In this document: in pieces, positions 2,460 through 45,015 of the stretch
How positions within the stretch are numbered: position 1 is the stretch's first letter
How the letters are laid out: each line of letters opens with the position of its first letter
From: Rebecca billardiae RCC1528
Taxonomy: Eukaryota > Protista > Haptophyta
Length of the DNA stretch: 64,000 nucleotides
Direction of reading: 5' to 3'
NCBI GenBank assembly: GCA_965240325.2
Contig: OZ251253.1
Location: forward strand, 496,001-560,000
The notes under the pieces: generated by a model
The model's database searches: none
The model's input: only the letters and a program-made list of their open reading frames with translations
What the model was told of the DNA's origin: nothing
Translations under genes and position numbers: made by a program

Positions 2460-6473
<4,014 letters not shown>

Positions 6474-6934
6474 TGACGGCGGCTGCGGCGCGGCGAGGGA
6501 GCGGCTGCTTGCTGGCGGGAGCATGTGTACACTCGGCGTGCGCGGTGGCCGACCGGCGGCCTCAAGCTTGGTAGGGACACCCCGCCGCGCGATGCCGCGC
6601 GGCAGCCATCGCCCCGGCCGCCGCCGCGCATCAGACGACAGCGATTCAGCGCGCAAAGCTATTGAAATCGCGGCTCGCGCTGAAGCTTCCGCGCTTGATC
6701 TCTCGGGTAGTTGATGAATATTCGGGGGATCGCCCGACGCGCATTTCGGCCCATTTCCCCGAAAAGTTCCACATCGGGCGGTGTGCGGTGTAGTAGGCCC
6801 GGAACCGCACGGCGCTTCGTCCGACTGCTTGGCCGCCGAGCCGCGCTCCCCGCGGGCACCAAACACGATCCCACGCAGCCGAGCGACCTAGGAGCGACCT
6901 AACGAACGCTTCCGCAGCGGAACCGAAGCGAACG

Positions 6935-21986: not shown

Positions 21987-24827
21987 CTAATAGTCCTCGT
22001 CCTCGTCCTCGTCGTAGTCCGTGCCGGAGCGCGACGAGCCGTCCGAGTCGTCGGTCTCGCTCTCCTCCTCGTCGGGGCGGCGCGTGCGCACCTGCTCGTC
22101 CGCGTCCGTGTACAAGTTGTCGAGGTCGATGCGGTCTGAGTCGAGCTCGTGGATGCGGAGATCGCGATCTCGGCGGCCGCGGCCCGGCCGGCGCGTGTCC
22201 GCGGGGTGCTCGGCCGCGGCGGGGCGGCGGCGCCCCGGGCTGGGCGGCGCGGCGTCGTCCGCGCCCTCCGCGCCGCCCTCGCCCTCCGCGCCGTCGCCGT
22301 CGCCGTCCGCGCCGCCGCCATTGTTCTGCTCCCAGGTGGTGGCGATGGCGCGGACCATCGCGTCGCCGCGGCCGCCGTCCGCCGCCGCCCACTTGCGGAG
22401 GAGCGAGAGCGGCGGCTCGAGCCCGTGGTGCGCGCGGTGCGGGTCGGCGCCTGCGCGCGCCGCGGCGCAAGCGTGGCGGCGCGACGGGGCACCGCGTGAG
22501 CGAGCGCGCGCGCGCGCGCGCGCGCACCCGCCGCCGCCTCGCGGGCGGCCGCGCCTGCGGCCCTGGCGGCGCGCGGCGCGGCGGCGCGCGCTCGGCGCAG
22601 CGCGCACCGGCGGTGACGAGGGTGAGGGCCGCGTCCGCCCAGCCCTTGGAGCACGCCATGTGCAGCGGCGTGCGCATCGATGCAGAGAGCGCCTCGACGG
22701 CCGCGCCTGCGCGCGCGGCGCGCGGCGCGCAGCGCGCGCGCGTGAGGCGCGCGCGCGCGCACGGACGGCGCGCGCGCTCGGCGCGTGCGGCGCACCGGCG
22801 TCGATGAGCCTGGAGACGATGGCGGTGTGCCCCGCGGCGGCGGCGGCGTGGAGCGGCGTGCACTTGGTGCGCAGCCCGCGCCGGTCCGTCAGCTTGCGCT
22901 GCACGCCCGTCGGGTCGTCCTCGCCGCGCTCGAGCAGCAGCAGCCGCCCCGACGAGAGCAGCTGCGCCGCGCGCGGCTCCGACGCGCCGCCGCCGCCGCC
23001 GCCGCCACCGAACCGGCGCGCCGCGGCCGCGCCCGGCGTGGTGGGCCGGCTCGCGCCGCCCAGCGGCGCGGAGCCGCGCGTCTCGCCGCGCGTGAGCGCG
23101 CGGCCGAGCTTGCCGCCCGGCGTGGTCGGCCTGCTCGCGCCGCCCGCCGTGCCGCGCGTCTCGCCGCGCGTGAGCGCGCCCGCCGCGCCGGTCGCGCGCT
23201 CGCGCTCGCACAGCCGCGCCTCCTCCGCGGCTGCTGTGAGTAGCAGCTCGAGCGCTGGCTCGGAGCCGACGAAGGCGGCGGCGTGGAGGAGGGCCTCGCC
23301 GGGCGGCGCGCCGCCCATCTCCTCGGTGGAGAGCCGCTCGTGCCGCCAGTGGCACAGCTGCATCGGCAGGTGCCCGTCCGCCGAGCCGACGATGTCGGCG
23401 ACCGCGGCCGCGTCCCGCACTATCAGCGCCGCCCACAGCTCTGCGGCGGTGCGGTCGGCGGCGGCGCGCAGCTCGTCGAGCCGCTCCTTCATCTCGTCGA
23501 GGTCGTCGGCGGGGGCGTCGAGGTGGCGCTCGGCGAGCGGCGCGCGGAAGTGGCGCGGCGCCGCCGCCACCGCGTCCTCCAGCAGCATGCGCTTGAACAC
23601 CGCCGCCTCGCCCGCGATCGCCTCCTGCGAGAGGACTCGGTTGTGCATCGAGAGCGCGCGCACATAGCACGCGTCGTAGTCGACGTCGTCGTCGTCGCGC
23701 CGTTCCTTTGAGTAGAGGAGGGCCACGCGCCCCTTGAGCGCGAACTGGCCGTCCTTGGCGACCTTGGGGTTGGTCACCTCGAGCGCCTGCTCGCCGTCCA
23801 CGTACGCGCGCAGCATGTTCGCCGACGAGTCGACGGTCACGGTGAGCACGTGCCACGTGCGGTCGGAGAGCGCCGGCGCGTCCGCGTCGCCAAATTCCTT
23901 CAGCGTGCCGACGTGGCCGTCACCGTCAACGCGCAGCTGCGCCTCCTCGTCGTTCTCCTTGGCGGCCGCCCACTTGTCCCAGCCGGCGGTGGAGAGCAGG
24001 TTGCGCGAGCGCGCGTCGAGCAGCTTCACGTGCATCGCCAGCGTGAACTGGTTGAGGTGCGTGCCTGCGCGCGCACAGCGCCGCGCGCGCGCGCGCGCGC
24101 GGGCGGGCGGGGGCGCGGGGCGCGCCGGGCGGCGGAGCGCCGGGCGGCGGAGCGGGCGCAGAGGTCAGGGCGAAGGCCGGCCGCGCAGCCAGCCCGCCGG
24201 CGGGGCGGCGGGGGCGGGGGTGAGGGCAGCCGGTGGGCCGGGGGGGGGGGGGGGGGGCGAGCGCGGCGCCCACGAGAGCGCGCGCGAGCCCGCGCCCGCC
24301 CAGCCCTCGGCCACGCGCCCGCCCGCGCGCGAGCGCGCCGCCGCGCGCTCGGCCGTGCCTGCCGCGCGGCGCACGCCCGCGCGCGCTCGCGCGCGTGAGG
24401 CGCGCACCGTTGCCGTTCTTGCGGAAGGGGACGCGGAGGACGAGGAAGGTGGAGGGCCAGCACTTGAGGCAGCGCAGCCCGCCCGTGCGCGCGTACACCC
24501 ACTTGCCCCGCCCCTCCACCCACCCCGGCCCGCCGTCCTGCGTCCCCACCTGCCCGCGCGAGAAGTCGTAGAAACTCGAAGTGCGAGTCGTGCGCGGGTT
24601 GGCCGCTGCCGCGCGCCGCGTCTGGCGCATCCACGCAAAGTCCGAGTCGACCATCTGCGACTCGAGCCGGGCGGTGGCGTCGGCGACGAGCTGGCGCTCC
24701 GACTCCTCGAGCGCCGTCTCGGTGCGCCGCTCCGCCTCCATCGTCCTGGCGAGCAGCGCGGCCAGCTCCGCCTCGCCCTTGGGCGCGATCTTGGAGGCTT
24801 GGCGCGCGAGCGCGCCGCCCGGCCGCG

Positions 24828-24858
<31 letters not shown>

Positions 24859-27800
24859 GCCGTCGCCGCCGCCGCCCGACGCGCCGCTCTCGGCGTGGCC
24901 GAGGTGGATCGCCTCGGCCTCCTCGGGCGAGACCAGCGCGTCGATGAAGTCCGCGTACCTGCAGCGCGCGGAGGTGCGGCGGGCGGGGCGGAGCGCGCGC
25001 GCGCGCGGGCACGCGGCGGGTCGGCAGTTGGCGCGGCTGCTCTCGAGAGCGCGGTTGGTGCGTGTGCAGCGGCGCAGCGCGGCCGGCTGGGTGGCCGACT
25101 GGCGCGGACGGCGGCCACGGCGAGCACGGCTGCCAGCTCGCGCGCAGTCGCAACGCCCGCCCCCCCCGTGCGTGTGCGCCCTGTGCCCGCGCCACGCTGC
25201 CCGGCGGCACGCGCCACGCCGCCCGCGCCACGCCGCCCGCGCCGCGCCGCGCCGCCCGGCGCCGCCCGCCCGCGCGTGCGCCGCACGTGAGGTGTCCCGC
25301 CGCCGTGATCGATCGGACGAAGAAGAGAATGTCCGCGGGCGAGACGTCGGGCACGTCGAGCCAGTCGAGCGCGCCCCACACCTCCGCGGGCGAGAGGATC
25401 CCGTTCTGGTCCGCGTCGAACTTGGTGAACGCATCTGTTGCGGCGCGCGCGAGCACGCACGCGCGCGCGCCACGCGCGCACGCACACGCGCGCGCCACGC
25501 GCGCGCGAGCGCGGCGGCGGCGCGGCGGCGGCGGTGGGACGACGTGGTGAGCCGCGGCGCGACGGGGGCGGCGTGGCGTGCGACGGCGGCGGGCGGCGCG
25601 GAGCGAGGGCGCGCGCGGCCGCGTCGGCAGCGCCGGCCGTGCGGCGCGCCGCGCGCACCGTGCAGCATGAGTCCCTTTGCCTTGATCGCCTCTCGCACGC
25701 GCACCGCCTGCGCGCGCTGCTTGAGCAAGCTCCACTCGTCCTCGAGGGTGAAGAGCTTGGCGAGCGGCGTCTGCTCCCAGCGCTTGGACATGCGGCGGCG
25801 GCACGCGAGCGTCATCGAGAACCAGATGCGCCGGCGCGCGGGCTCGGCGGGGATCGAGCGCAGCAGCAGGTTCAGCTCTGCTGGCGTGAAGTGCATCGAG
25901 CAGTCGATGAAGCGGCAGCAGTTGTGCGCCGCCGCCGCCTGGTAGTCGAGAGGCGGCCGCCAGCCCGCGCTCGCGTCGAGCACGGTGTCCTGCGCGCTCA
26001 CGCAGCGGAGGGCGACGGCGCAGTCCGCGCCGGGGACGAGCGCCTCGCCGCGCGCCTGGCGCAGGTGCAGCGCGCAGCGCAGCGTCTCCGCCTCCGCGAG
26101 CGAGAGCACCACGCGCTGCCGCCCCGCCTCCTCGCGCCGAAACTCGCCAGAGGTGAGCACGCGCGTCAGCTGCTCGAGCGTGAGCGCGCGCCCGCCGCGC
26201 CGCCCGCCGGCGGTGCCGGCGCTGCCGGCCGCGCGCGCGCCCGTCGCGGGCGGCGAGGCGGCGGCGGCGCCGTTGGCGGCGCGCGCGCCGCCCGCGCGCG
26301 CGCCGCGCCCGAACGGCCACCAGCCGCCGCCGCTGCCCGTCGAGCCGCCAGAGTCTGAGCCCGCGCCGCCGCCGCCGCCGCCGCCGTCGTCTGGCCCGCC
26401 GCCGCCCGCGCCGCCGCCGCCGCCGCCGCCGCCACCGCCGCCGGCGGAGCGCAGCAGCTGCTGCAGCTCGGGCTCGGAGAGCGCGATGTCCTCGGCGGAG
26501 CGAAGCGCCTCCACCACCTCCGCCACCTCAAACTGCCCCGAGCCGTCCACGTCAAGCAGTCGCAGCGCGTTCCGCAGCTTGGCCGCCTGGCGCTCGCTCA
26601 GCTCGGAGCGGCGCGGCGGCGCGGGCCGGAGCTGGGCGAGGGAGGGCACCCAGTCGAGCGCGCACACGACGTTCTTGAGCCGGCGCTCGCCCACCCAGTG
26701 CAGGTCGAAGTAGTTGCGCGCGATGTGCAGGTGCGCGGGGAACGGCAGCGCCGATCGCGAGTACAGCCGGAACTGCGAGGCCGGGTAGAAGACACCCGAG
26801 GAGAACGGCTCGGACGCGGACGCGAGCGCCGACAGCGGCCAGCGGCGCGGCTCCTCGCCTGCCGCGTGCGAGCGCGCGGGGCGCGGGGCGGCGGCGCGCG
26901 AGGGCGCGCGCGCGCGCGCGCGGGGCAACGGGCGGGCGCGTGTGGGCACACGCACGCGCCGCCTGTGCGCGCGCGCGCAGAGAGAGCAGGCCGCCCCGCG
27001 CCCTGTGCGCGCGCGGCCGGCCCTCGCTGCCCCGTCCCGTCGCGTGCGCGTGCGCGTGCGCGTGCGCGTGCGCCGCACGCACGGCGCCGCCCCGCCGCCC
27101 GCGTGCCGCGTGCATGCGCGTGTACGCGCGCGCGCGTGCGCGTGCGCGTGCGCCGCGCGCACGCACCGTCGCGCTGATACGCGAGGTCGGCGTAGCGCTC
27201 CATCTCGATCTCCTGCTCCTGCTCCTGGTCGCGCTCCTTCTCCGCCTCCTGCTCGCGCATCTGCTCCGTCTCGATGGCGGAGACGCCCTCCGAGGAGGCG
27301 ACGGACTGCGGGGGCGCGGGGCGGAGGAGGGAGGCGCGCGGCGTCGGCCGAGGGCAGCGCGCGCGCGGCGGCCACGCGCACGGGCACGCGCACGGGCACG
27401 CGCGCGGCGCGAGCGAGCGCGCGCGCTCGCTCGCGCGCGCGCGGCGCCGCGCTGCTCGGTGCTCGGCGCTCGCACCTTGAGAACATTCTCAACGACGGCC
27501 TCGTCCGCCTTGGTGCGGATGAAGTCGACGAAGCCGTCGCGCCGCTCGGCGAGCACCTCGACGTACTGCCGCGGCATCGGAAGTGTCTCGGAAACTTCCG
27601 TGTCCACGTCCTCGATGAAGACGTCGAGCGCTCGGCCGAGCGTGTCGCGCGTCTCGACCGAAGAGCGGCGGCCGCGCGCGCCGCCCGCGGCGGCGCCGCC
27701 GGAGGGCTCGCGCGAGGCGGGCCTGCTCCCGCCCGCGCCCGCGTGCGCCACGCGCGCGTTCACGGAGAGAGACAGCTCGCCCGTGCGGCGCGAGGCGGCG

Positions 27801-30800
27801 CCCTCCGCGCGCAGCAGCTCGAGCAGCTCCTGCGCGCTGAAGAGCACCGCAGAGGTCGCCTTGTGCAGCCCCGAGCGCTCGGCGCGCGGCACGAGCGCCT
27901 CCAGCCCCGCGAGGTCGCGCAGCCCGATCGCCAGGCGGAGCTCGTCCTCGATCGCCGCGCGCGCCTTGAGGTGCGCCCAAGGGAACTCGGTGAAATGCGG
28001 GTAAGGGTCGATGCCGAGCGACGACGCCTTGGCGGAGAGGCGCGCGCGCTTGAGCGCGAGCTGGCGGTCGAGGTCGCGCGTGCGCGCGGCGAGCCGTCGG
28101 TCGAGCATCTGCACCTTCTGCCGCTGCGGCTCGGACGCCTGCGCCGCCGTCGCCGCGTCGGTCATCGCCACCACCCAGCCCAGGAGCGCGCGCTCCGCCG
28201 CCGTCAGGATCACCGGGACGCCGCCGCCGTCGTCGGCCAGCTTGAGCGCGCGCGCGGAGAAGAGCCAGCCGTAGGTCTCGTCAGAGCCGCCGCCGGCCGC
28301 GCCCTCGTCCTCCTCCTCCGCGCGCCGCTCCGGCCGGATGCGCGCGGGCGGCACGCGCGGCTCAAAGTCGCCGTCGTCAAACTGCACGTCGTATAGCGTG
28401 GGCACGCCGGCCACCGGGGAGTCCACCACGCTGGCGATCTCGCCGGGGTACCACGTGCCCCAGCCCTGCCAGTTCGCCTCGACGCGCTCGCCGAGCCCGA
28501 ACGCGCCGCCCGTGCCGTCGTCGTCGTCCTCCTCCTCCTCCTCCTCGCCCTCCACTTCGCTGTCCTCGGCGCCGCGCCGCTCCCGCCGCACGCGCGCGGG
28601 CGGCACGGCGGCCTCAAAGTCGCCGTCGTCGAACTTCACGTCGTACAGCGGCGGCCCGCCCTCCGCGTCGGGCTCGGTCACCTTGGCGATCTCGCCGGGG
28701 TACCACGTGCCGCCGCCCTGCCAGTTCGCCTCGACGCGCGCGCCGACGGCGAGCGCGCCGCCGCCGCCCTCGCCCTCCGCGTCCAAGTCTGCGGCCGCGG
28801 CGGCGGCGGCGGCGGGCGCGCCCGCAGCGGCGGCGGCAGCGACCGCGGCCGCGGCGCGCGCCTCGGCCGCCTCGCTCGCGGCGGCGCGCGCCGCCTTGGC
28901 CTTCTCCCGCCGCTCCTTGGCCGCGTCCTTGAGCTCGCGCCGCTTGCGCTCGCGCTCGATCAGCGCGCCGCGCAGCGCGTCGCCGACGCTCGCCGCGGCA
29001 GGCAGCAGCTCGGGCGAGCGCAGCTGCGCGGTCACCTTGCGAAGCTGTCGCGGCTGCAGCGCCGCAGGGTCGAGCGCCGCGAGCGCGGTGGGCTCGGCGA
29101 GCGTGTCGAGCGCGCGCCGCGCCGCGGCCAGGTGCGCAAGCAACTTGAGAGCCTCCTCCTCGTCGTTGAGGCAGCGCTGCAGCGCGACAAGCATCGCTGC
29201 GCGCGGCACGGCGGTCTGGCCCCGCGCGCGCAGCCCCTTGCGAAGCGCGCGCAGTGCGAGGGGGTCGACGTCGGCGGGGAGGCCGTGCGCCTCGGCGGCG
29301 ATGGCGGCCTGTAGGTCCTCGTCCAGCTCGCGCTGCGCGGACGCCGCCTCCGCCTTCACCGCCTCGAGCTGCTTCTGCTTGCGCACGAGCTCGCCTGCGC
29401 GCACGGCGCGCGCGGTGGCGTGTGCGCGCGCGCGGTCTTCGGAGTGAGCGCGCGCGGTACGCACGCGCGGGGGCGGCGCGCCAAGACAGCAGGGCCCATC
29501 CGCGCCCAATCCTGACCCCCGCGTGCACGCACGCGCACATGCGCACGCGCACACGCGCGCGCACGCGCACGCGTACGCGCACGCGCACGCGCACGCGCAC
29601 GCGCACGCGCACGCGCACGCGCACGCACACGCGCGCGCGCGCGCGCGCACGCACGGCCGCACGCGCACCGTATGCCTCGAGGTACTCGCCGAGCGCCTTG
29701 GCCCACTGCGCCAGGTAGCGCACGCACGTGTACTGCTGGTACGCCGAGTTGGGCGTGCGCTGCGCCGTCACCATCGCGTGCTCGATGCCGTTCCCCAGCT
29801 GCACGAGCCGCGCCCACTCCTCAGGCCGGAGCCGCCCCGCCTCCGCGTCGTCCGCGAGCTCAGTGACGCGGGCGCAGAACGCGCCGAAGCCCTGCGCCGG
29901 CAGCTTCTCGTTCTGGAAGCCGAGCGCGCGCTTGACGCGCACGGTGAGCGGCTCCTTGGCCGCGCGCTCCTCCTTCTCCTTGGCAGACTCCTTCCCCGCC
30001 GCCGGGTCGGCCGCGTCGAGCGCCTTGAGCGTGAACGTGAACGCGTCTCGACACAGCTCGTCGCCTTCGAGCAGCGCGGGCGTGCGACACAGCAGCTCGA
30101 ATGCGCCCTGCTCGTACGAGTTGATGTACCCCGCGGTGGAGCGCACCTGCTCGAGCAGCGGCGCGACGATGCCCTTGGACGCGCGGATGTCCTTCTCGAG
30201 GATGGCGCCAAACTGCTTCATCCGCAGCAGCCGCGACTGCACCGCCTCGACCGAGGCGCCGGCGTCCTTGGCGCGCGCCGCGCCGCCGCCCTCGTCCTCG
30301 TCCTCGCCGTCGGGCTCGGGATCGTTGCCGTCGTCGCCCGAGGCCGCGGCCGCGTTGGCCGTCGCGGCGATCGCGACGACGGCGGGCAGGTCGTCGACGC
30401 CGTCGAGCCCGAGGAAGTCGCACGCGCACGAGCACACCGCGGCGAGCGTGGCCGAGGCGGACGTCTTGGCGGACGCGGCGCGCGCCTCATCCGCCGCCTC
30501 CGCATACGCGTGCAGTGCGAGCACCCAGCCGTGCAGCGCGCCCGCGGCCTGCCCGCCCTCGCGCGCGAGCGCCGCCTCGGCGGCGGCGGCGGCGGAGGCG
30601 TACCGCTGGAGCGCGCGCGCGGCGGACGGCGGGATCGCATCTCGCTCGAAGCGCGCGACGCGCGGCCCGAGCGCGGCGGGCTGCAGCGCCTTGGTGGCGA
30701 ACGTGGCCCAGTCCGGCTTGAGCGAGAAGAGCGAGGCGCACGTCTCGCCGAGCGCGCGCAGCTTCTCGCTCGGCCCCTTGGCGGCGGCGAGCGCGTCGAG

Positions 30801-33800
30801 CGCCTCGGGGCGCAGCCCGCGCACCGCCTCGACCGCGCCGCCGTACGCGGCCGCCGCCGCGTCGAGCGCCGCCTGCGTCTCGGGCGGCAAGACGGGGAGC
30901 GCGCCGAACGCGCCGATCTCGCGCGCGCCCGCCTCGCCCAGCGCCTCGAGCCCGCTGTTCGCGTCGGCGACGAGGTGGAGCACGGGCTTGGCACGCGCCT
31001 CCTCGCGCGCGAGCGCGCGCGCCTCCTTCGCCCGGACCTCCGAGTCGTGCGCCGAGTCCTTGAGCCGCGTCTCGTGGTGCTTGTCGGCCGCCTCCCACGC
31101 GGCGGCGAGCTGGATGAGGCGCGCGCCGTCGCGCGTGATCGTGCGCCCGTCCACGTCCAGCAGCACCACCGCCGGCGCCTCGGGCCGCGGCGGCACGTTG
31201 AACGTCTCGCGCAGCAGCTTGCGCCGCGCCGAGTGCGAGTACGGAATCGCCAGCCACGGCATCTCGGAGATCTCGTCGACGAACTGGTCGGCGGTGGACG
31301 CGGCGGAGACAAAGACGATTGCCAGCGCGTCCTCAAAGTGCGCGTGGCACGAGCGCAGCGCGTGCGTCAGCCCGATGCCCACCTGCGTGGCGAACGCGCC
31401 GCCGCCGCCCTCGTCGACCGCGCCGAAGAAGAGCGCGACCGTCTTGTCCTCGAGCACGCCGCGCCCGGTCGTGCCGAGCTTGGGCGAGATGAAGGCGTGG
31501 CCGAGCGAGTCGAGCACGTACGCGGACGCGTCGTCGTCGCGCACCTTGAAGTGCGTGTAACCGCCCATCAGCGCGCCAAACGCGTTCTTGCGCCACACGT
31601 TGGCGAGGTTCTGCGCCATCAGCTGGTCGTACTGCGTCGCCTCAGTGCGCATCGAGTTCACCACCAGCCACGCCGCCACGTCGTCGAGGCGGAGCGGCGC
31701 CGGCTCGCCGCCGAGCGCGGCGGAGGCGAGCGGGCCCGCGGCGGCCTCGGCGGGCGTGAGCGGTCGGCGCTGCACGCCCGCCTTGCGCAGCTGCCGGCAC
31801 ATCAGCCCCTGCACCTCGGGGATGAGCAGCAGCGACACCGTCTGCCCGCGGCCGATGCCGCGCATGCGGAACGCGCCCTGCGCGTAGTCGCGCCACACCA
31901 TATCCTTGCCCAGCGTGACGACCGCGCGCGCGTCCGCGTGCTGCGGGATGTCCATGCCCGTCGTGTGCACCTGCGCGCGCGCGGGGGCGGGCGGGCGGGC
32001 GCGCGCGCGCGCGGAGGAGCGGGGCGGTGAGGCATCGGCCGAGCGCGCGGGGCGGGCGCTCCGCTCGGCGCGCGCCGCGCCCGCCACCCCACCCACCTGG
32101 TCGAAGAATGTGAAGCGCTTCTGCGGCGAGATGCCGGACTGCGAGAGCTTGAGCACTCGGCCGGTGGAGCGTACGAGGATCATCTTCTGGTCGGCCTCGT
32201 CGAGAAAGACAACGCCCTCGCACCAGCGCGCGAACGCGGGCACGCGCAGCAGGAAGTGCGCGACCTGCGCGTTGTTCAGGCCGGTGATGAGCGCGCCCGT
32301 GTCGATCAGCGCGTGCACGCGGTGCGCGGACGTCGCGACGGCGGTGAGCAGCGACTCGACGGTCCAGCCGTGCGCCATCGCGGACCACGAGACGACGGCC
32401 GGGTCTGTGAGCACGGCGAGCATCTTGCCGTCCGAGCCCTCCTCGTACCCGCACCGGCCGAGCGCGAGCGGCAGCAGGTCGGACGGCGTGCCGGAGAAGC
32501 CGATGCGCCGTCCGAAGAGCATCTCCCCGCCTACCTCCTGCCCCGACGCGGAGATCTTGGTCACCTGGTGCTGCATGAAGGCGGGGAAGACAACCTCCTC
32601 GAGGTACCAGTGCACCGCGAGCGGCTGCGTGCGCAGCAGCCGGAACAGCTTGGACATCTGCTCGTCGTTCGACTGCTTGAGCAGCCAGAGCGGCACGACG
32701 ACACGCGCGTCGTCCATCGCGCTGCCCTGCGGCGGCGGCGGCCGCCGCCCGTCCGCGCCGTCGGCGGCGGCGGCGGCGGCGGCGGGGCGCGTCGAGCCCT
32801 TGACCATCCCGCCCGCCTGCTCAACCCAGTCCTCGAACATGATCGCCGACTTGCGCGTGGGGAACGGCCCCACCTCCTTCTCAAAGTTGGTGCGCACCAG
32901 GTTGATCACGTCGTCCTCGAAGTCGACGCGCCGCAGCCCCTCGTACCGGTACGCGAGCACGGTCAGCCCGATGATCACGTCGGGGTGCGCGAACTCGGAG
33001 GCGCGCGCGGGCACGTCCTTGCCCACGAACGGGATGGCGAGCTTGAAGCGCGAGCGCGGCATCATCGGCTCGGTCTTCTTGAGCCGGGCGTACTCCTCCT
33101 CCGTGAGCAGGCCGAACGTGACGCGCGAGATCTTCTGCAGGCAGTGCGGCAGCAGCGTGCCGAGCCACTCGGCGACGAGGTTGAGCATCTTGAACGCCTT
33201 GGGCGCGAGCACGCGCGCCGCGAGCGCGTGCAGCCGCCGCGTCGCGAGCTCGAGCTCGGCCGCCGACGGCGCGACGGGGCGCACCTGCCCGCCGCCGCCG
33301 CCGCCGCCGCCGGTGGCGGCGGCGCGCGCGCCGCTCGTCGTGAGCGGCGGGTCCGGCACGGCCTCGAGCGTCGCCTCGTCCCAGCGCGCGGAGCCGACGA
33401 GCGCAGAGGCGTCGCGCAGCACGTACGCCGACATCTGCTCCGCGTCCAGCCCCGAGATGTGCTGCGCCTCGAGCCACAGCTGCGCCCAGCGCGCCATCAC
33501 CGGCCGCATGCGCGCCGCGTACCACTCGTCGTTGAGCAGCACGAGGTGCGGCGACGCCTGCAGCGAGTGCGCGGCGTACCCCTCGTCGATCACGTCGCGC
33601 AGCTCGGCGAGGATGGCGTGCGCGCGCGTGGACTGCTGGAAGGGCACGCTCATCCGCCCGCCCGACTGCACGGCAAACACCGCGTCGAGCAGGTGGATCG
33701 CGAGCGTCCACCGCTCGGGCGAGAAGTCGAGCGGCAGCTTCGCGCCGATCGGGAAGTTGAGCTCCGAGCGCAGCGGGTGGAGCAGCAGGTCGACCTCGTC

Positions 33801-36800
33801 CATCACGAGCACGCCGCGGTCGACGAAGAGCTCGAGCACGCGCGCGAGCGCGCGCACGTCGCGCTCCATCGACGGGTGGTGCTTGCGCCGCGCGTCGCGC
33901 AGCACGTCGAGCTTCTCGAGCAGGCGCAGCTGCACGCTCTTGACGGACGTCGACGTGCACAGCACGACGCCGCGGTGCGCCACCGCCGAGCGCAGCTTGT
34001 CCACCAGCTCCCACGACGCCTCGGCCGAGCGGTCGAAGGAGAGGGTGAAGACGCGCTTGCGGATGATCGACGAGAAGGCCGAGCGCAGCGTCGCGCGCGT
34101 CTGCTCGAGCAGCGCCTGCGGCATCATCTGCACGACGAGCGAGTGGCCGTCGCCGAGCATGAGCGACAGGATCGGCGAGATCACCGTCGTCTTGCCCCCG
34201 CCCATCAGCATCTGCTTGACGAGCGGCTCGCCGCGGCGCACGCGCGCGGCGAACTCGGCGATCAGCTCGACCTGCGCCTTGCGCAGCAGCAGGTTGTGAA
34301 TGAACTCGAAGAGCAGCAGCCGCGGGTCGAAGACGAGCCCGCCCGCGGCGGCGGCGGCGGCGGCGGCGGCGCTCGGCGCGCCGTTCGCGCCGTGCGCGGG
34401 CGCGGCCGCCGCGGCCGCGGAGGAGGAGGGCGGCAGCGGCGGCGCGCGCTCGACGTAGTGCCGCCCGGTGCGCAACAGGTCCGCCAGCGCCTCGGCGCGC
34501 AGAGAGATGCTCGACGCGAGCTCGGCGGGCACCGCCGCCGCGGCCGCGGACGAGTCGGCGCGCGGCGGCGCGCGCGCCGCGGCGCGCGCGCCCTCGGCCG
34601 CCGCGCCAAGCGTGCGCGCGAGCCCGTCTGCCTCGGCGATGCAGCGGTTGGTCTGGCCGATGCGCGTGGCGTGGCACACCGTCGCCACGACGAGGTCGAA
34701 GAGCGCCGACGCACGCTCCGCGCTCACGAACGGGTTGAGCCGCATCAGGTCGTCCTCGCCGCGCGTGGAGATGAGCAGGCAGAAGAGGAAGTCGAGCGAG
34801 GCGTGCGCCTCCGCGCCCGCGCTCTGCCGCAGCGCAAACGCGATGCGCCGTCCGAGCTCGGCCATCTGCGCGGCCTCGGCGCCGCCGTCCGCGCCGCCGC
34901 CGCCGCCGCCGGCGCCGCCCGCCGGCGCCGCGCCCGCCGCCGCGGCCGCGCTCAGGTCGATCTTGTTCGCCACCTCCTCGATGCGAGGCAGCGCGCGCGA
35001 GACGTACGCGGCGTCCTTGGCGCGCCGCTCGCGCAGCTGCGCGAGCAGCGCGGACACGGCTGAGCCGGACTCCTCGAGCGCGGCGGCGGCGTGCGCGGGC
35101 TCGGACGGCCACGCGCGCGGCACGAGGGTGAGGCGGTGCGGCGCCGCGTCGTTCTGCTGCCGCGCGTACTGAGCCATGTCCGCCGACATGCGCTCGTGCA
35201 TGTCGCGCGCCACCTGCGGCACAGCGGCGCGGCGCGGCGCGCGAGCGGCGGGCGCGGCGCGGCGGCGGAAGCGCTCGGCCGGCGGGCGCGCGCGCGCGCG
35301 CGCGGGAAGGAGGGGGCGGCGGCGGCGCGGCGGCGCGGCGGCGCGGCGCGCGCGCTCGGCCGGCGCGCGGCGGTCGGCCCACCTTGGAGCCTGCGTGCGG
35401 GTGGCGCATCACGTCGAACGAGAGCTCGGCCGAGACGGCGCCGAGGCCGAGCTGCGCGCGCGGCACGCGCCGCACGTACGCGTCGAGGCCGAGCACGGCG
35501 AGCGGCTCGGAGGCGAAGGCGGCGCACTCGTCGGCGCTGGTGGAGAGGGCGACGTCCCCGAGCAACGCTCCGTCGACCGGCCGCAGTGGCCGCCGCGTGC
35601 AGCCGTAGTCCGTGACGAACGGGATGATCCACCGCCGGTTCGCCTGGCCGCTCAGGTCGAAGGGGCGCGCGGCGGGCACGTGCGCGTGCGCGATGCCGCC
35701 GCCCACGCCGTGCACGCCCTCGGCCGAGGGCGGCGCGAGGCCGGCCCACCAGTCCTGCACGGCGGCGAGCTCCTCAGCGCACTGCTTGTCCACCGCCGCG
35801 GTCAGCTCCTCCACGCCGCCGCCGCCCGCGCCGCCGCCGAAGCCGTCAAAGCCCGTGCGCGAGGAGAAGCCGCCGCCGCCGCCAAACCCGCCCCACGCGC
35901 CGCCGCGGCTCCCAAACATGCGCTCGCGCGTGAGCGCGTCCGAGCGGCGCTGCAGCATGCGCCGGCGCACCGCGGTGCGCAGCCCGGAGCCTTTGGGCTG
36001 CGAGAGCGCGCTCAGCTCGTGCAGCACGCCGCGCAGCAGCCCGCCGAGCGGCGCCTCCGCCCAGTCGCCGCCGGGCGCCACGCCGACGAAGATCTCGCGC
36101 CGGTTGTGCTTGCGTGTGTCTTCGAACGGCGGCAGGAACGGCCCGAGCAGCGGCTTGCGCGCGAGCGTGTGCAGCACCGAGTTGAGCAGCGACGGCTCAG
36201 ACGCGTCCGGGAAGAGCGGCAGCAGCATCGTGCCGAGCGACGCGGAGCAGTTGTCGTCGACCAGCCGCGCCTCGGTGCCGCCGCTCAGCAGCGAGTAGAG
36301 CAGCAGGAAGCCGCCGCCCTCGACCGTGTACGCCGGCGTGGGGCGCACCGTGTTGAGCGCGCCCACCAGGTTGACGAGCTGCTCCATCATGAGCGAGCGC
36401 TGGTGCGTGTACCTCATCTGCAGCTCCTCGAGGTACTTGAGCAGCTTGGTCGCGTCGAACTGGCGGAGCGTGTCGTCCCAGTGGCTGATCCACCGGTTGG
36501 GCGGCGGGCGCGCGGGCACGTCCACCGCGCACGCGCCGAGCCCGGCCGCCTCCGCGCGCAGCTGCGCGCGCCGGTTCTTGCACAGCAGCACGAGGTGCAC
36601 GGGCAGACGCTGCTCCTCGCGCCGAGGGTCTGCCGCGTCGACCACGCACCGGTTGAGCAGCGCGAGCTCCTCCTCCGCCGAGAGCCGGCAGTCCGCGGAG
36701 ACGAGCCCCAGCTTGTCCACGTAGTGCGCCATCTCGAGCGTGAGCAGCCACGGCATCCGCACGGGCGCGTCCAGCATCACAAACGAGATCTTGAGCCGGC

Positions 36801-42706: not shown

Positions 42707-45015
42707 GCGCGTGCCGCGCGCGGCGCGCGCGCACGGGGGAAGGGGCGGAGGCGGCGACGCGTGAGCGCGGGCGGCGCGGACGCGCTCTACGGGCGCGCGG
42801 CCCCGCCCGCGTGCCGCGCGCGTGCCCCGCGACCACGCGCGCGCGCGCGCGCGCGCGTCCGCGCGCGAGGCGCGCGTGGCGGGCAGGCCGGGCGCGAGAT
42901 TGCAATCTCGCGCGCGGCGTGCGCGAGATTGCAATCTCGCGCGCGCTGCGTGCGCGCCCCACGCACCGTCTCGGCGTAGTAGGGCTTGGTGTACTCGGAC
43001 GGGAGCGCGAGCGGCGGGAAGCGGTACGCGGGGGGCATCTCGCCGCGCCGCAGCTTCGGCCGCGTGAGCAGCTGCATGCCGTCGTACCTGCGCGCGCGCG
43101 GGCGGGGGCGGAGCGCACCTCAGCGCGCGCTCGGCGCGCGGCGGCGGCGCGGCGGCAGCGGGCGCGGCTCGGCGCGCGGCCGCGCGGCGCCGCACCCCTT
43201 GACGATGAAGCGCTTGAGGTCGGGCTTCCACTCCCAGAGCAGCTCGGCGTGGCGCTGCGTGTACGCCGGCTCCTGCGTCTGCGGCAAGTAGTCCGTCTGC
43301 GGGTTGAGGAACAGCTTGAGGTAGTAACCGACGTCGCGGTACACGGACCATTCCGGAAAGTTCTTGCCCACGAGCGCGCGGTCGTCCGACACGTAGAGCG
43401 GGGTGATCGCCTTGCCGAGCGGGAAGGCGAGGCAGCGGCAGAGGCCCTCGAGGAAGCGCGAGACGCCCGACTCGAGCTTGTCGCTCTTGTCCCAGTTGAA
43501 GATCGCCGTCGTCTCACCCGCGATCCCCTCGAAGTAGTCGAGCGCTCGCGAGCGCGCAATGTTGAGCTCTGGCGAGTGGCACACGACGGTGGCGGCCTGC
43601 TTGGCGAGGTTGCCCGGCGTGTACGCGTAGCCGCGGCCGGGGTTGGCGAGCTCGGGCGGGCCCGCGCCGCCGCCCATCAGGTGCAGCGACACCGCGCTCG
43701 GCGCGTCCACCGCCGCCTTGCGGATCACCGCGTCCGCCACCGCCGCGATGCAGAGCGCCACCACCATCCGCACGCCATCGATCGGGCGCGTGTGGTCCTG
43801 CGAAAAGACGGACGCGGCGAAGTGCTCGAGCACGCGGCGGAGCAGCGTGAGGCACTCGAGCTGCGTCTCGTAGTCCACGTCTGCGCCGCGCGGGGGAGGC
43901 GGGGGCGCACGCGCGTGAGTGCCGGGCGCGGAGGCGGCGGGGCTTTGCAGTGCGCAGCAGCCGAGCCGAGCGACGCGCGCGTCCACGCGGCCGCGCGCAC
44001 CCTCCTGCCACACGCACGCCTTGCGCACGGCGGGCGGCGCGTTGGGCGGCTCGGGCATCGGCAGCAGCGAGGTGAAGGTGTGCTGCGCCAGCGCCACCAC
44101 CAGGTACGCCGTGTTCTTCACCGCGTGGCTCTGCACCGCGATGAGCGTGCACAGCTTGTCCGCGTGCCGGATGGCAGCGACCGCCTCGACGATGGAGCGC
44201 ACGCGCGCCGGCTGCTGCAGCAGGTCGATGGGCACGTAGGTGGGGAGCAGCGTGTGCGCGCCCGCGTCGACCGGGCCGCGGCGGAGCAGCCGGTCCGCCA
44301 GCGCGTGCAGCTGCGGCGTCGGCGGCGGCGGCGGCGTCGACCACGGGAAGCGCATCGGGTGGCGCATCAGCACGCGCACGCCGTCCGCCGAGATCAGCCT
44401 CCGAGATCGCCCCTCCAATAGCACGATCGTCGGGATCGACTCGACGCGGAAGAGCTCGCCGAGCTCGGCGCGCGCGCGCGCGTTGGAGAAGGGGACGGAG
44501 AGCCACGGCATCGTGCCGAAGTACGCCGCGTGCTCCGCCTCGTCGTGGTCGCTCGAGACGAGCACCACCTCGAACGCGTGGCCCGCGCGCCGAAGTTTCG
44601 CGTAAACTTCCTTGAGCGCGGGCGAGAGAGAGCGGCAGGGGCCGCACCACGACGCGCCAAAGTAGAGCGCGACGACGCCGTGCGCGGCGAGGGTACGCTC
44701 GGCGAAAACGTACTGCAGCGCGCTCCCCGCGCCGCCGCGCAGCGCGCCGCCCTCGCCGCCCGCCGCCTCGTCCGCCACGCCGCCGCCGCCGGCCGCCGCC
44801 TCGGCCGCCGCGGCCGCGGCCGCGACGGCGGCGACGCTCGCCGCGCCGCCGCCGTCCAGCGCCTTGGCGTCGACGGGCGGCGCGCGGCGCACGCGCGGCA
44901 GGCACTTCTCGTCGTCGCAGAGCACGTCGAGCTGGCCCACGCGCAGCGGGCCCGCCGCCTCGCCGCCCTCCGCCGCGCCCGCGCCCGCCGCGCCGCCGGC
45001 CGCGCCGCCGGCCGC

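Follow-up and report, generated by a model that had tools for sequence, protein, structure and literature searches.

Proteins with the Pfam domains DUF3638 and DUF3645 occur widely among protists, algae and fungi, and often reach lengths of thousands of residues. Are the two domains separate units or parts of one enzyme, and of which kind would that enzyme be? A gene of the haptophyte Rebecca billardiae RCC1528 raises this question. It lies in a 64,000-nucleotide (nt) stretch of contig OZ251253.1 (positions 496,001 to 560,000 of the forward strand; contig C37 of assembly GCA_965240325.2, 72 Mb in 41 contigs), hereafter called the window. Homologue alignments place the gene, with many exons, on the minus strand from at least ~44.3 kb to ~23.3 kb of the window. 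Two of its exons (35213-32097 and 31970-29669, minus strand) very probably encode a nucleoside triphosphatase (NTPase) motor of the superfamily 2 (SF2) helicase/translocase type. As judged from its sequence, the gene clearly belongs to the DUF3638/DUF3645 family, with matches to both Pfam models above their gathering scores and in order.

Sequence motifs of the DUF3638/DUF3645 core

The minus-strand open frame 28614-35222 (frame start 35222) holds a full series of SF2 motifs. A preliminary description of this DNA, drawn from its letters, had reported such a series, and a string search of the frame recovered every member of it in the same order and position. Conservation was read from the columns of 60 aligned homologues at ~40-58% identity, and residue numbers here and below are those of the structural model.

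34272-34286, minus strand: Q-motif-like LRKAQ (string search; L114, R115 and Q118 at least 90% conserved)
34185-34205, minus strand: Walker A (motif I) MGGGKTT (M141, G142, G144 and K145 invariant; loop between strand 135-138 and helix 145-157)
33789-33806, minus strand: Walker B (motif II) VMDEVD (D276, E277 and D279 invariant; end of strand 271-275)
33744-33779, minus strand: invariant segment HPLRSELNFPIG (HPLxSELNxPIG) right after motif II, where the insert exits the first RecA-like lobe, RecA1 (P284, S287, E288, L289, N290 and P292 invariant; predicted local distance difference test score, pLDDT, <50 at 285-293)
32487-32498, minus strand: motif III FSGT (FSGTP 710-714 at least 90% conserved; after strand 706-711)
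32286-32312, minus strand: ALIDTGALI (string search; D.GAL..G at least 90% conserved)
32190-32213, minus strand: VVFLD, in the second RecA-like lobe, RecA2
32097-32108, minus strand: FFDQ, the strand of motif V (string search)
31947-31970, minus strand: motif V VHTTGMDI (HTTGMDI 887-893 at least 90% conserved)
31857-31880, minus strand: motif VI QGAFRMRG, with two arginines (QGAxRMRG 916-923 at least 90% conserved)

RecA1 also carries a motif Ia-like VPxALL. As the motif residues vary little or not at all among the 60 homologues, they support the SF2 reading. Pattern counts were made in the 120 homologues listed, out of more than 270 relatives. The Walker A pattern was present in 110 of the 120, DE[VIL]D in 117, SGTP in 119, D.GAL in 110-119, motif V in 114 and motif VI, by a strict pattern, in 89. 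All five motifs stood in order in 82 (strict patterns), and the spacing from motif II to motif III was 362-898 amino acids (aa) throughout. These counts and the constantly long spacing indicate that selection maintains both the motif set and the long insert throughout the family.

Motif V spans the junction between the two exons, whose limits were predicted from splice-site sequence and from the points where homologue tblastn segments break.

32097-35213, minus strand: exon with RecA1, the insert and the first half of RecA2 (acceptor cag/GTG at 35214/35213, donor at 32096; 'exon 23' of the preliminary description)
31971-32096, minus strand: in-frame 126-nt GT..AG intron between FFDQ and HTTGMDI (from sequence; not in the homologue consensus)
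29669-31970, minus strand: following exon, with motifs V and VI, the remainder of RecA2, the post-RecA2 helix, the thioredoxin-like domain and onward (donor G/gt at 29669/29668)

The stretch 31971-32096 starts with GT, ends with AG and stays in frame, and the consensus of the 60-sequence alignment, FYDQIHTTGMDI, runs through without it. The break that had been marked between FFDQ and VHTTGMDI is therefore read as an in-frame intron.

The two Pfam domains occupy different parts of the core, as follows.

33675-34325, minus strand: DUF3638 (PF12340), spanning RecA1 between the Q-like motif and a point shortly after DEVD (E 2e-33; 115.9 bits against a cut-off of 31)
32961-33059, minus strand: DUF3645 (PF12359), 33 aa, between DEVD and FSGT (E 5e-14; 51.7 bits against a cut-off of 25)
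32979-33032, minus strand: conserved core PFVGKDVPARASEFAHPD (GKDxP...F.HPD) of DUF3645 (P532, K536, D537, P539, S543, F545, P548 and D549 invariant; loop of low pLDDT)
32511-33779, minus strand: all-alpha insert specific to the family, 423 aa, which separates motif II from motif III

Both domains were present in 37 of 37 homologues scanned with Pfam. The core of ~850 aa is conserved whole, and many homologues are little more than this core, so the two DUFs belong to one module, as had been proposed. The preliminary description had also put DUF3645 inside a long insert between motifs II and III, and the Pfam match falls exactly there, between DEVD and FSGT. DUF3645 itself lies outside the RecA fold, as a conserved strip of 33 aa in a separate all-alpha insert domain. 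When the insert was folded alone, it matched neither PPXD, Arch nor Hel2i nor any known fold, and it is thus not PPXD-like.

Among the most invariant stretches of the family, two (33744-33779 and 32979-33032) were predicted with pLDDT <50. These HPLxSELNxPIG and GKDxP...F.HPD loops are conserved and apparently flexible, and may be candidate contacts to a substrate or partner.

Predicted fold and proposed mechanism

The core was modelled with AlphaFold2 as a contiguous 1001-aa read-through (window 31623-34625, minus strand) using the 60-sequence alignment, with 42 intron-encoded residues included. The model had a mean pLDDT of 78.7 and a predicted template modelling score (pTM) of 0.76. The intron-encoded residues came out as a disordered loop, with pLDDT <50 at residues 844-890. 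RecA1 showed the alternation of strands (E) and helices (H) E135-138, H145-157, E163-167 ... E271-275. It is followed by a helical excursion at residues 283-705, after which the chain returns with strand 706-711 and SGT at 711-713. In a second alpha/beta lobe (~726-950), TTGMDI (888-893) follows strand 837-842, and QGAFRMRG lies in helix 911-918, with the next strand at 928-934.

33780-34343, minus strand: first part of the RecA1 lobe, model residues 95-282 (model, Pfam and alignment to SF2 RecA1)
32451-32510, minus strand: re-entry into RecA1, with strand E706-711 and then SGTP (motif III)
31776-32450, minus strand: RecA2 lobe, model residues 726-950, intron included (both lobes covered in structure alignments to SecA, RIG-I, DinG and Snf2)
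31626-31688, minus strand: conserved long helix after RecA2, model residues 980-1000 (L980, W986, L987, N990, E995 and Q998 conserved; SecA alignments extend to residue 1001)

A structural search of 48,161 PDB representatives, independent of Foldseek, returned SF2 ATPases in all of the top 50 places, with alignments across both lobes and SecA first. Closed, nucleotide-bound RIG-I structures aligned over both lobes with a root-mean-square deviation of 3.4-3.8 A for ~290-310 residues. Compared with known structures, the model thus contains tandem RecA-like lobes and places the motifs on the expected strand-loop-helix elements, and the proposal of an SF2 ATPase withstood this comparison. As both lobes align together on nucleotide-bound closed SF2 structures, we infer that the motifs of the predicted model converge on one nucleotide site.

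These features suggest how the protein might work. ATP would sit between the lobes, held by the Walker A lysine and the acidic residues of DEVD from RecA1 and by the motif VI arginines from RecA2. Its hydrolysis would open and close the cleft, thereby moving or remodelling a bound polymer. The helical insert leaves RecA1 at the same point as the clamp domain of SecA and would probably enclose or select the substrate, as a clamp or regulator, by analogy with the inserts of other SF2 enzymes, namely the PPXD of SecA, the Arch of XPD and the Hel2i of RIG-I. The flanking thioredoxin-like, coiled-coil, Tudor, EF-hand and LamG modules may target or localise the motor, or gate it. That the ATPase is active is presumed from its intact and conserved catalytic residues.

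Several results weigh against the SF2 interpretation. Searches of the PDB with phmmer and hmmsearch gave low-complexity noise and no relative, and Foldseek against the PDB gave weak matches (best E ~3e-3), yet all of these were SF2 enzymes. The profile-profile scores of the family to SecA, SNF2 and DinG alignments were all non-significant, the best being a probability of 27% for the RecA1 of DinG. The RecA2 lobe is covered by no Pfam model, including no helicase C-terminal match. Furthermore, the structure was predicted from a sequence with a translated intron in it, with motif convergence derived from fold alignments, and a 2025 paper describes the mechanism of DUF3638 as undefined.

Kinship within SF2 and alternative readings

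The SF2 assignment is solid, and the structure and profile comparisons lean weakly to different sub-families within SF2. Comparison sets of 24 SecA, 12 SNF2, 19 DinG and 25 ResIII proteins were taken from 26 Chloroflexota genomes; hmmsearch of these SecA, SNF2, DinG and ResIII sets found nothing significant. In hhalign, RecA1 scored 27% against DinG, 1.3% against SNF2 and 0.5% against SecA, and RecA2 <1% against all three, in a test limited by the low diversity of the family alignment (effective number of sequences, Neff, ~2.4). The long DinG alignment misplaces motif II and is unreliable past Walker A. Family sub-alignments compared by hhalign with single E. coli SecA, RapA, RhlE, DinG, HsdR, RecQ and RecG sequences gave weak scores, the best being RecQ at 18%.

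The core could act on nucleic acid as a conventional helicase or translocase of the ResIII, DinG-XPD or RIG-I kind, in which the insert would be an Arch- or Hel2i-like grip on nucleic acid. We judge this reading to fall just short of evenly balanced. Pfam and profile comparisons slightly favour ResIII/DinG-type helicases, and the weak ResIII matches begin at LRKAQ (profile positions 2-61 of 73) and span LRxxQ, Walker A and motif Ia. The nearest clusters outside the family by language-model features are DEAD/ResIII/Helicase_C_2 helicases, although their score of 0.80 is a lead only. All of these sequence signals are, however, below significance. There is no Helicase_C, Helicase_C_2 or DEAD_2 match in Pfam, no nucleic-acid-binding accessory domain in this gene or in the 120 homologues listed, and the insert resembles neither Arch nor Hel2i. 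The individual helicase groups fare as follows. The DEAD model matches weakly (E 0.09) in 2 of 37 members, with no Helicase_C, and motif II reads DEVD, so the signature of DEAD-box proteins is not seen. That of DinG/XPD (Rad3) is likewise missing, with no Helicase_C_2 or DEAD_2 match, a motif II that is not DEAH and an insert without an Arch match. In RIG-I-like receptors and Dicer, Hel2i is inserted in RecA2. Unlike in these helicases, the insert here lies in RecA1, and there is no sequence signal to them and no Hel2i match of the insert alone.

A second possibility is a SecA-derived or SecA-like polypeptide motor. Here a DEAD motor would descend from or converge on SecA, the insert would replace the PPXD clamp, and cytosolic protein chains would be threaded or unfolded. 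SecA and SecA2 chains took 11 of the 14 top places in a second structural comparison, came first, second and fourth in the unbiased search, and gave the longest alignments (340-508 residues). Motif II is DEVD in both proteins, the insert starts within ~10 residues of it in both, and hhalign pairs DEVD..PIG of the family with DEVD..PLIISG of SecA. The accessory domains of the family are of kinds that interact with proteins, and those listed include no nucleic-acid-binding domain. However, the lead of SecA over other SF2 structures is just 1-1.5 Z, where differences <1 count as ties. The SecA_DEAD model (PF07517) matched 0 of 37 family members at E up to 10, as compared with 26 of 37 for ResIII and 2 of 37 for DEAD, and the hhalign probability against the 24 SecA sequences is the lowest of the three RecA1 values.

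The preliminary description had stated that SecA carries an insert at the same position. In E. coli SecA, a long stretch indeed separates DEVD (209) from GMTGT (389), GRGTDI and QLRGRSGRQG come after it, and the PPXD is anchored to NBD1 (PMC5603524). The parallel holds for the position and not for the domain itself, since the family insert is ~420 aa and all-alpha, whereas PPXD is alpha/beta. Moreover, the motif VI arginines are spaced R-x-R in the family and R-x-x-R in SecA, and this giant protein is eukaryotic and apparently does not partner a membrane translocon. After RecA2, the SecA alignments run into the one conserved long helix (980-1000), but SecA_SW of Pfam is not matched and the model ends at residue 1001. 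On the SPECIFICALLY SecA-like question, SecA is the nominal closest structure and kinship is not demonstrated. We consider a SecA-like motor unlikely.

The motifs could also be relics, and the core a catalytically dead pseudo-ATPase scaffold in a giant adaptor protein. The genome bears on this through its five DUF3638 loci, all in giant open frames (up to 6,761 codons). The four loci outside the window are the following.

C3:3209609-3210262: paralogue, 68-69% identical, all motifs intact
C25:970246-970893: paralogue, 68-69% identical, all motifs intact
C30:990810-991565: paralogue, ~40-65% identical, all motifs intact
C16:897633-898073: paralogue with GEGKTS, SAAAP for SGTP, and TRGAWRLRS for QGAFRMRG

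Three of these four further paralogues keep every ATPase motif. With its SAAAP in place of SGTP and its lost motif VI glutamine, the C16 copy may be degenerate and inactive, and loss of activity may thus occur in the family. In the window copy, by contrast, every catalytic residue is intact, and the catalytic residues are invariant across homologues of ~40% overall identity, which is the pattern of selection for catalysis. A dead scaffold is therefore very improbable. It is still less credible that the core belongs to a different class of P-loop NTPase (SF1 helicase, AAA+, ABC or GTPase), for although the DUF3638 model of Pfam alone shows just Walker A and Walker B, the top 50 of the 48,161 structural comparisons are two-lobe enzymes of SF2 type and motifs III, V and VI follow the SF2 pattern in SF2 order.

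For the SF2 motor itself, the precedent of SF2 enzymes and the weak ResIII/DinG profile signal tip the balance slightly towards nucleic acid as the substrate. A polypeptide is a possible but less favoured substrate, for which SecA as top structural neighbour and the exclusively protein-binding types of accessory domain would speak. Any other substrate seems quite improbable. The boldest reading is that DUF3638/DUF3645 proteins form a eukaryote-wide unclassified SF2 clade with SecA as structural nearest neighbour, acting as cytosolic polypeptide motors with the ~420-aa helical insert, of new fold and at the position of PPXD, as a clamp, with a tether to microtubules and with gating by Ca2+ and redox modules; this is speculative, and we hold it to be doubtful.

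The gene, its family and their significance

A word search found more than 270 relatives, whose alignments cover 97% of the 861-aa core at 36-59% identity. Many of them are only ~1,060-1,200 aa long, that is, the core and little else, and more than 100 homologues, at 40-59% identity to this gene, come from haptophytes, dinoflagellates, diatoms and trypanosomes. The accessory domains of relatives include EF-hands, thioredoxin-like domains, ankyrin repeats, LamG, RING, WW, WWE, FYVE and RanBP-type zinc fingers. A C-terminal region with the Tudor/EF-hand/LamG exons is common to homologues. In the window, the following features of the same gene surround the two core exons.

44368-44676, minus strand: second thioredoxin-like segment, far upstream (similarity to the domain at 31143-31445)
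35214-35382, minus strand: upstream intron (read from sequence; homologue tblastn segments stop there)
~31143-31445, minus strand: thioredoxin-like domain after the ATPase core (Pfam)
29395-29668, minus strand: 274-nt intron, largely a (GTGCGC)n microsatellite (from sequence)
26555-29401, 26452-26859 and 23259-24065, minus strand: downstream exons with two Tudor-like domains (Tudor_5, E 4e-13), an EF-hand (E 1e-5, below cut-off) and a LamG/ConA-like domain (E 2e-7)

Given the similarity of the upstream segment to the domain at 31143-31445, the protein seems to carry two thioredoxin-like modules. A search of the ESM Atlas with the N-terminal region gave no usable match. The G+C content of the window is 73-80% over most of its length, and GT..AG introns and GC-rich microsatellites are present. 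The (GTGCGC)n intron at 29395-29668 reads as long VRVRVR runs in the open frame and can be mistaken for coding low-complexity sequence.

Family members are publicly labelled 'ubiquitinyl hydrolase 1' (UniProt) and 'NXN protein' (e.g. P0027, P0039, P0058, P0091 and P0118). No peptidase or classical nucleic-acid-binding domain was found in the Pfam lists of the 120 homologues listed, and no peptidase or deubiquitinase domain of Pfam in the scanned pieces of this gene. The absence of a peptidase domain from these homologues makes the label 'ubiquitinyl hydrolase 1' look over-propagated. The label 'NXN' derives from the thioredoxin-like domain and also looks propagated. A possible link of the family to viral-tegument-like deubiquitinases was dropped, as PMC9741609 mentions only Helitron helicases.

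Two family peptides were used to scan 185,579 prokaryote genomes, and one match was obtained, in PABI01000099.1 ('MAG: Anaerolineaceae bacterium'). This contig of 9947 nt has 64.5% GC. The match, at 3864-6689, shows 55% identity over all 1001 residues and lies in a giant open frame cut short by the contig end. It probably comes from a eukaryotic, haptophyte-like contig that was mis-binned into a bacterial MAG, and not from a bacterial homologue.

A literature search on the family returned gene lists only, with no mechanism or fold described. To our knowledge, the complete SF2 motor, the RecA2 lobe without a Pfam model and the insert of no known fold have not been described before. The SF2 call is a sound annotation at family level and would not surprise a helicase specialist once the motifs are seen. 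Reading the core as one complete SF2 motor nevertheless turns a catalogued, uncharacterised family into a testable enzyme, for which the residues to mutate are identified and small core-only homologues suit biochemistry. If the SecA lead reflected real kinship, the biology of polypeptide motors would extend into the eukaryotic cytosol, and the protein, if it does act as a SecA-like motor there, would be the first SF2 machine to thread proteins outside the Sec pathway.

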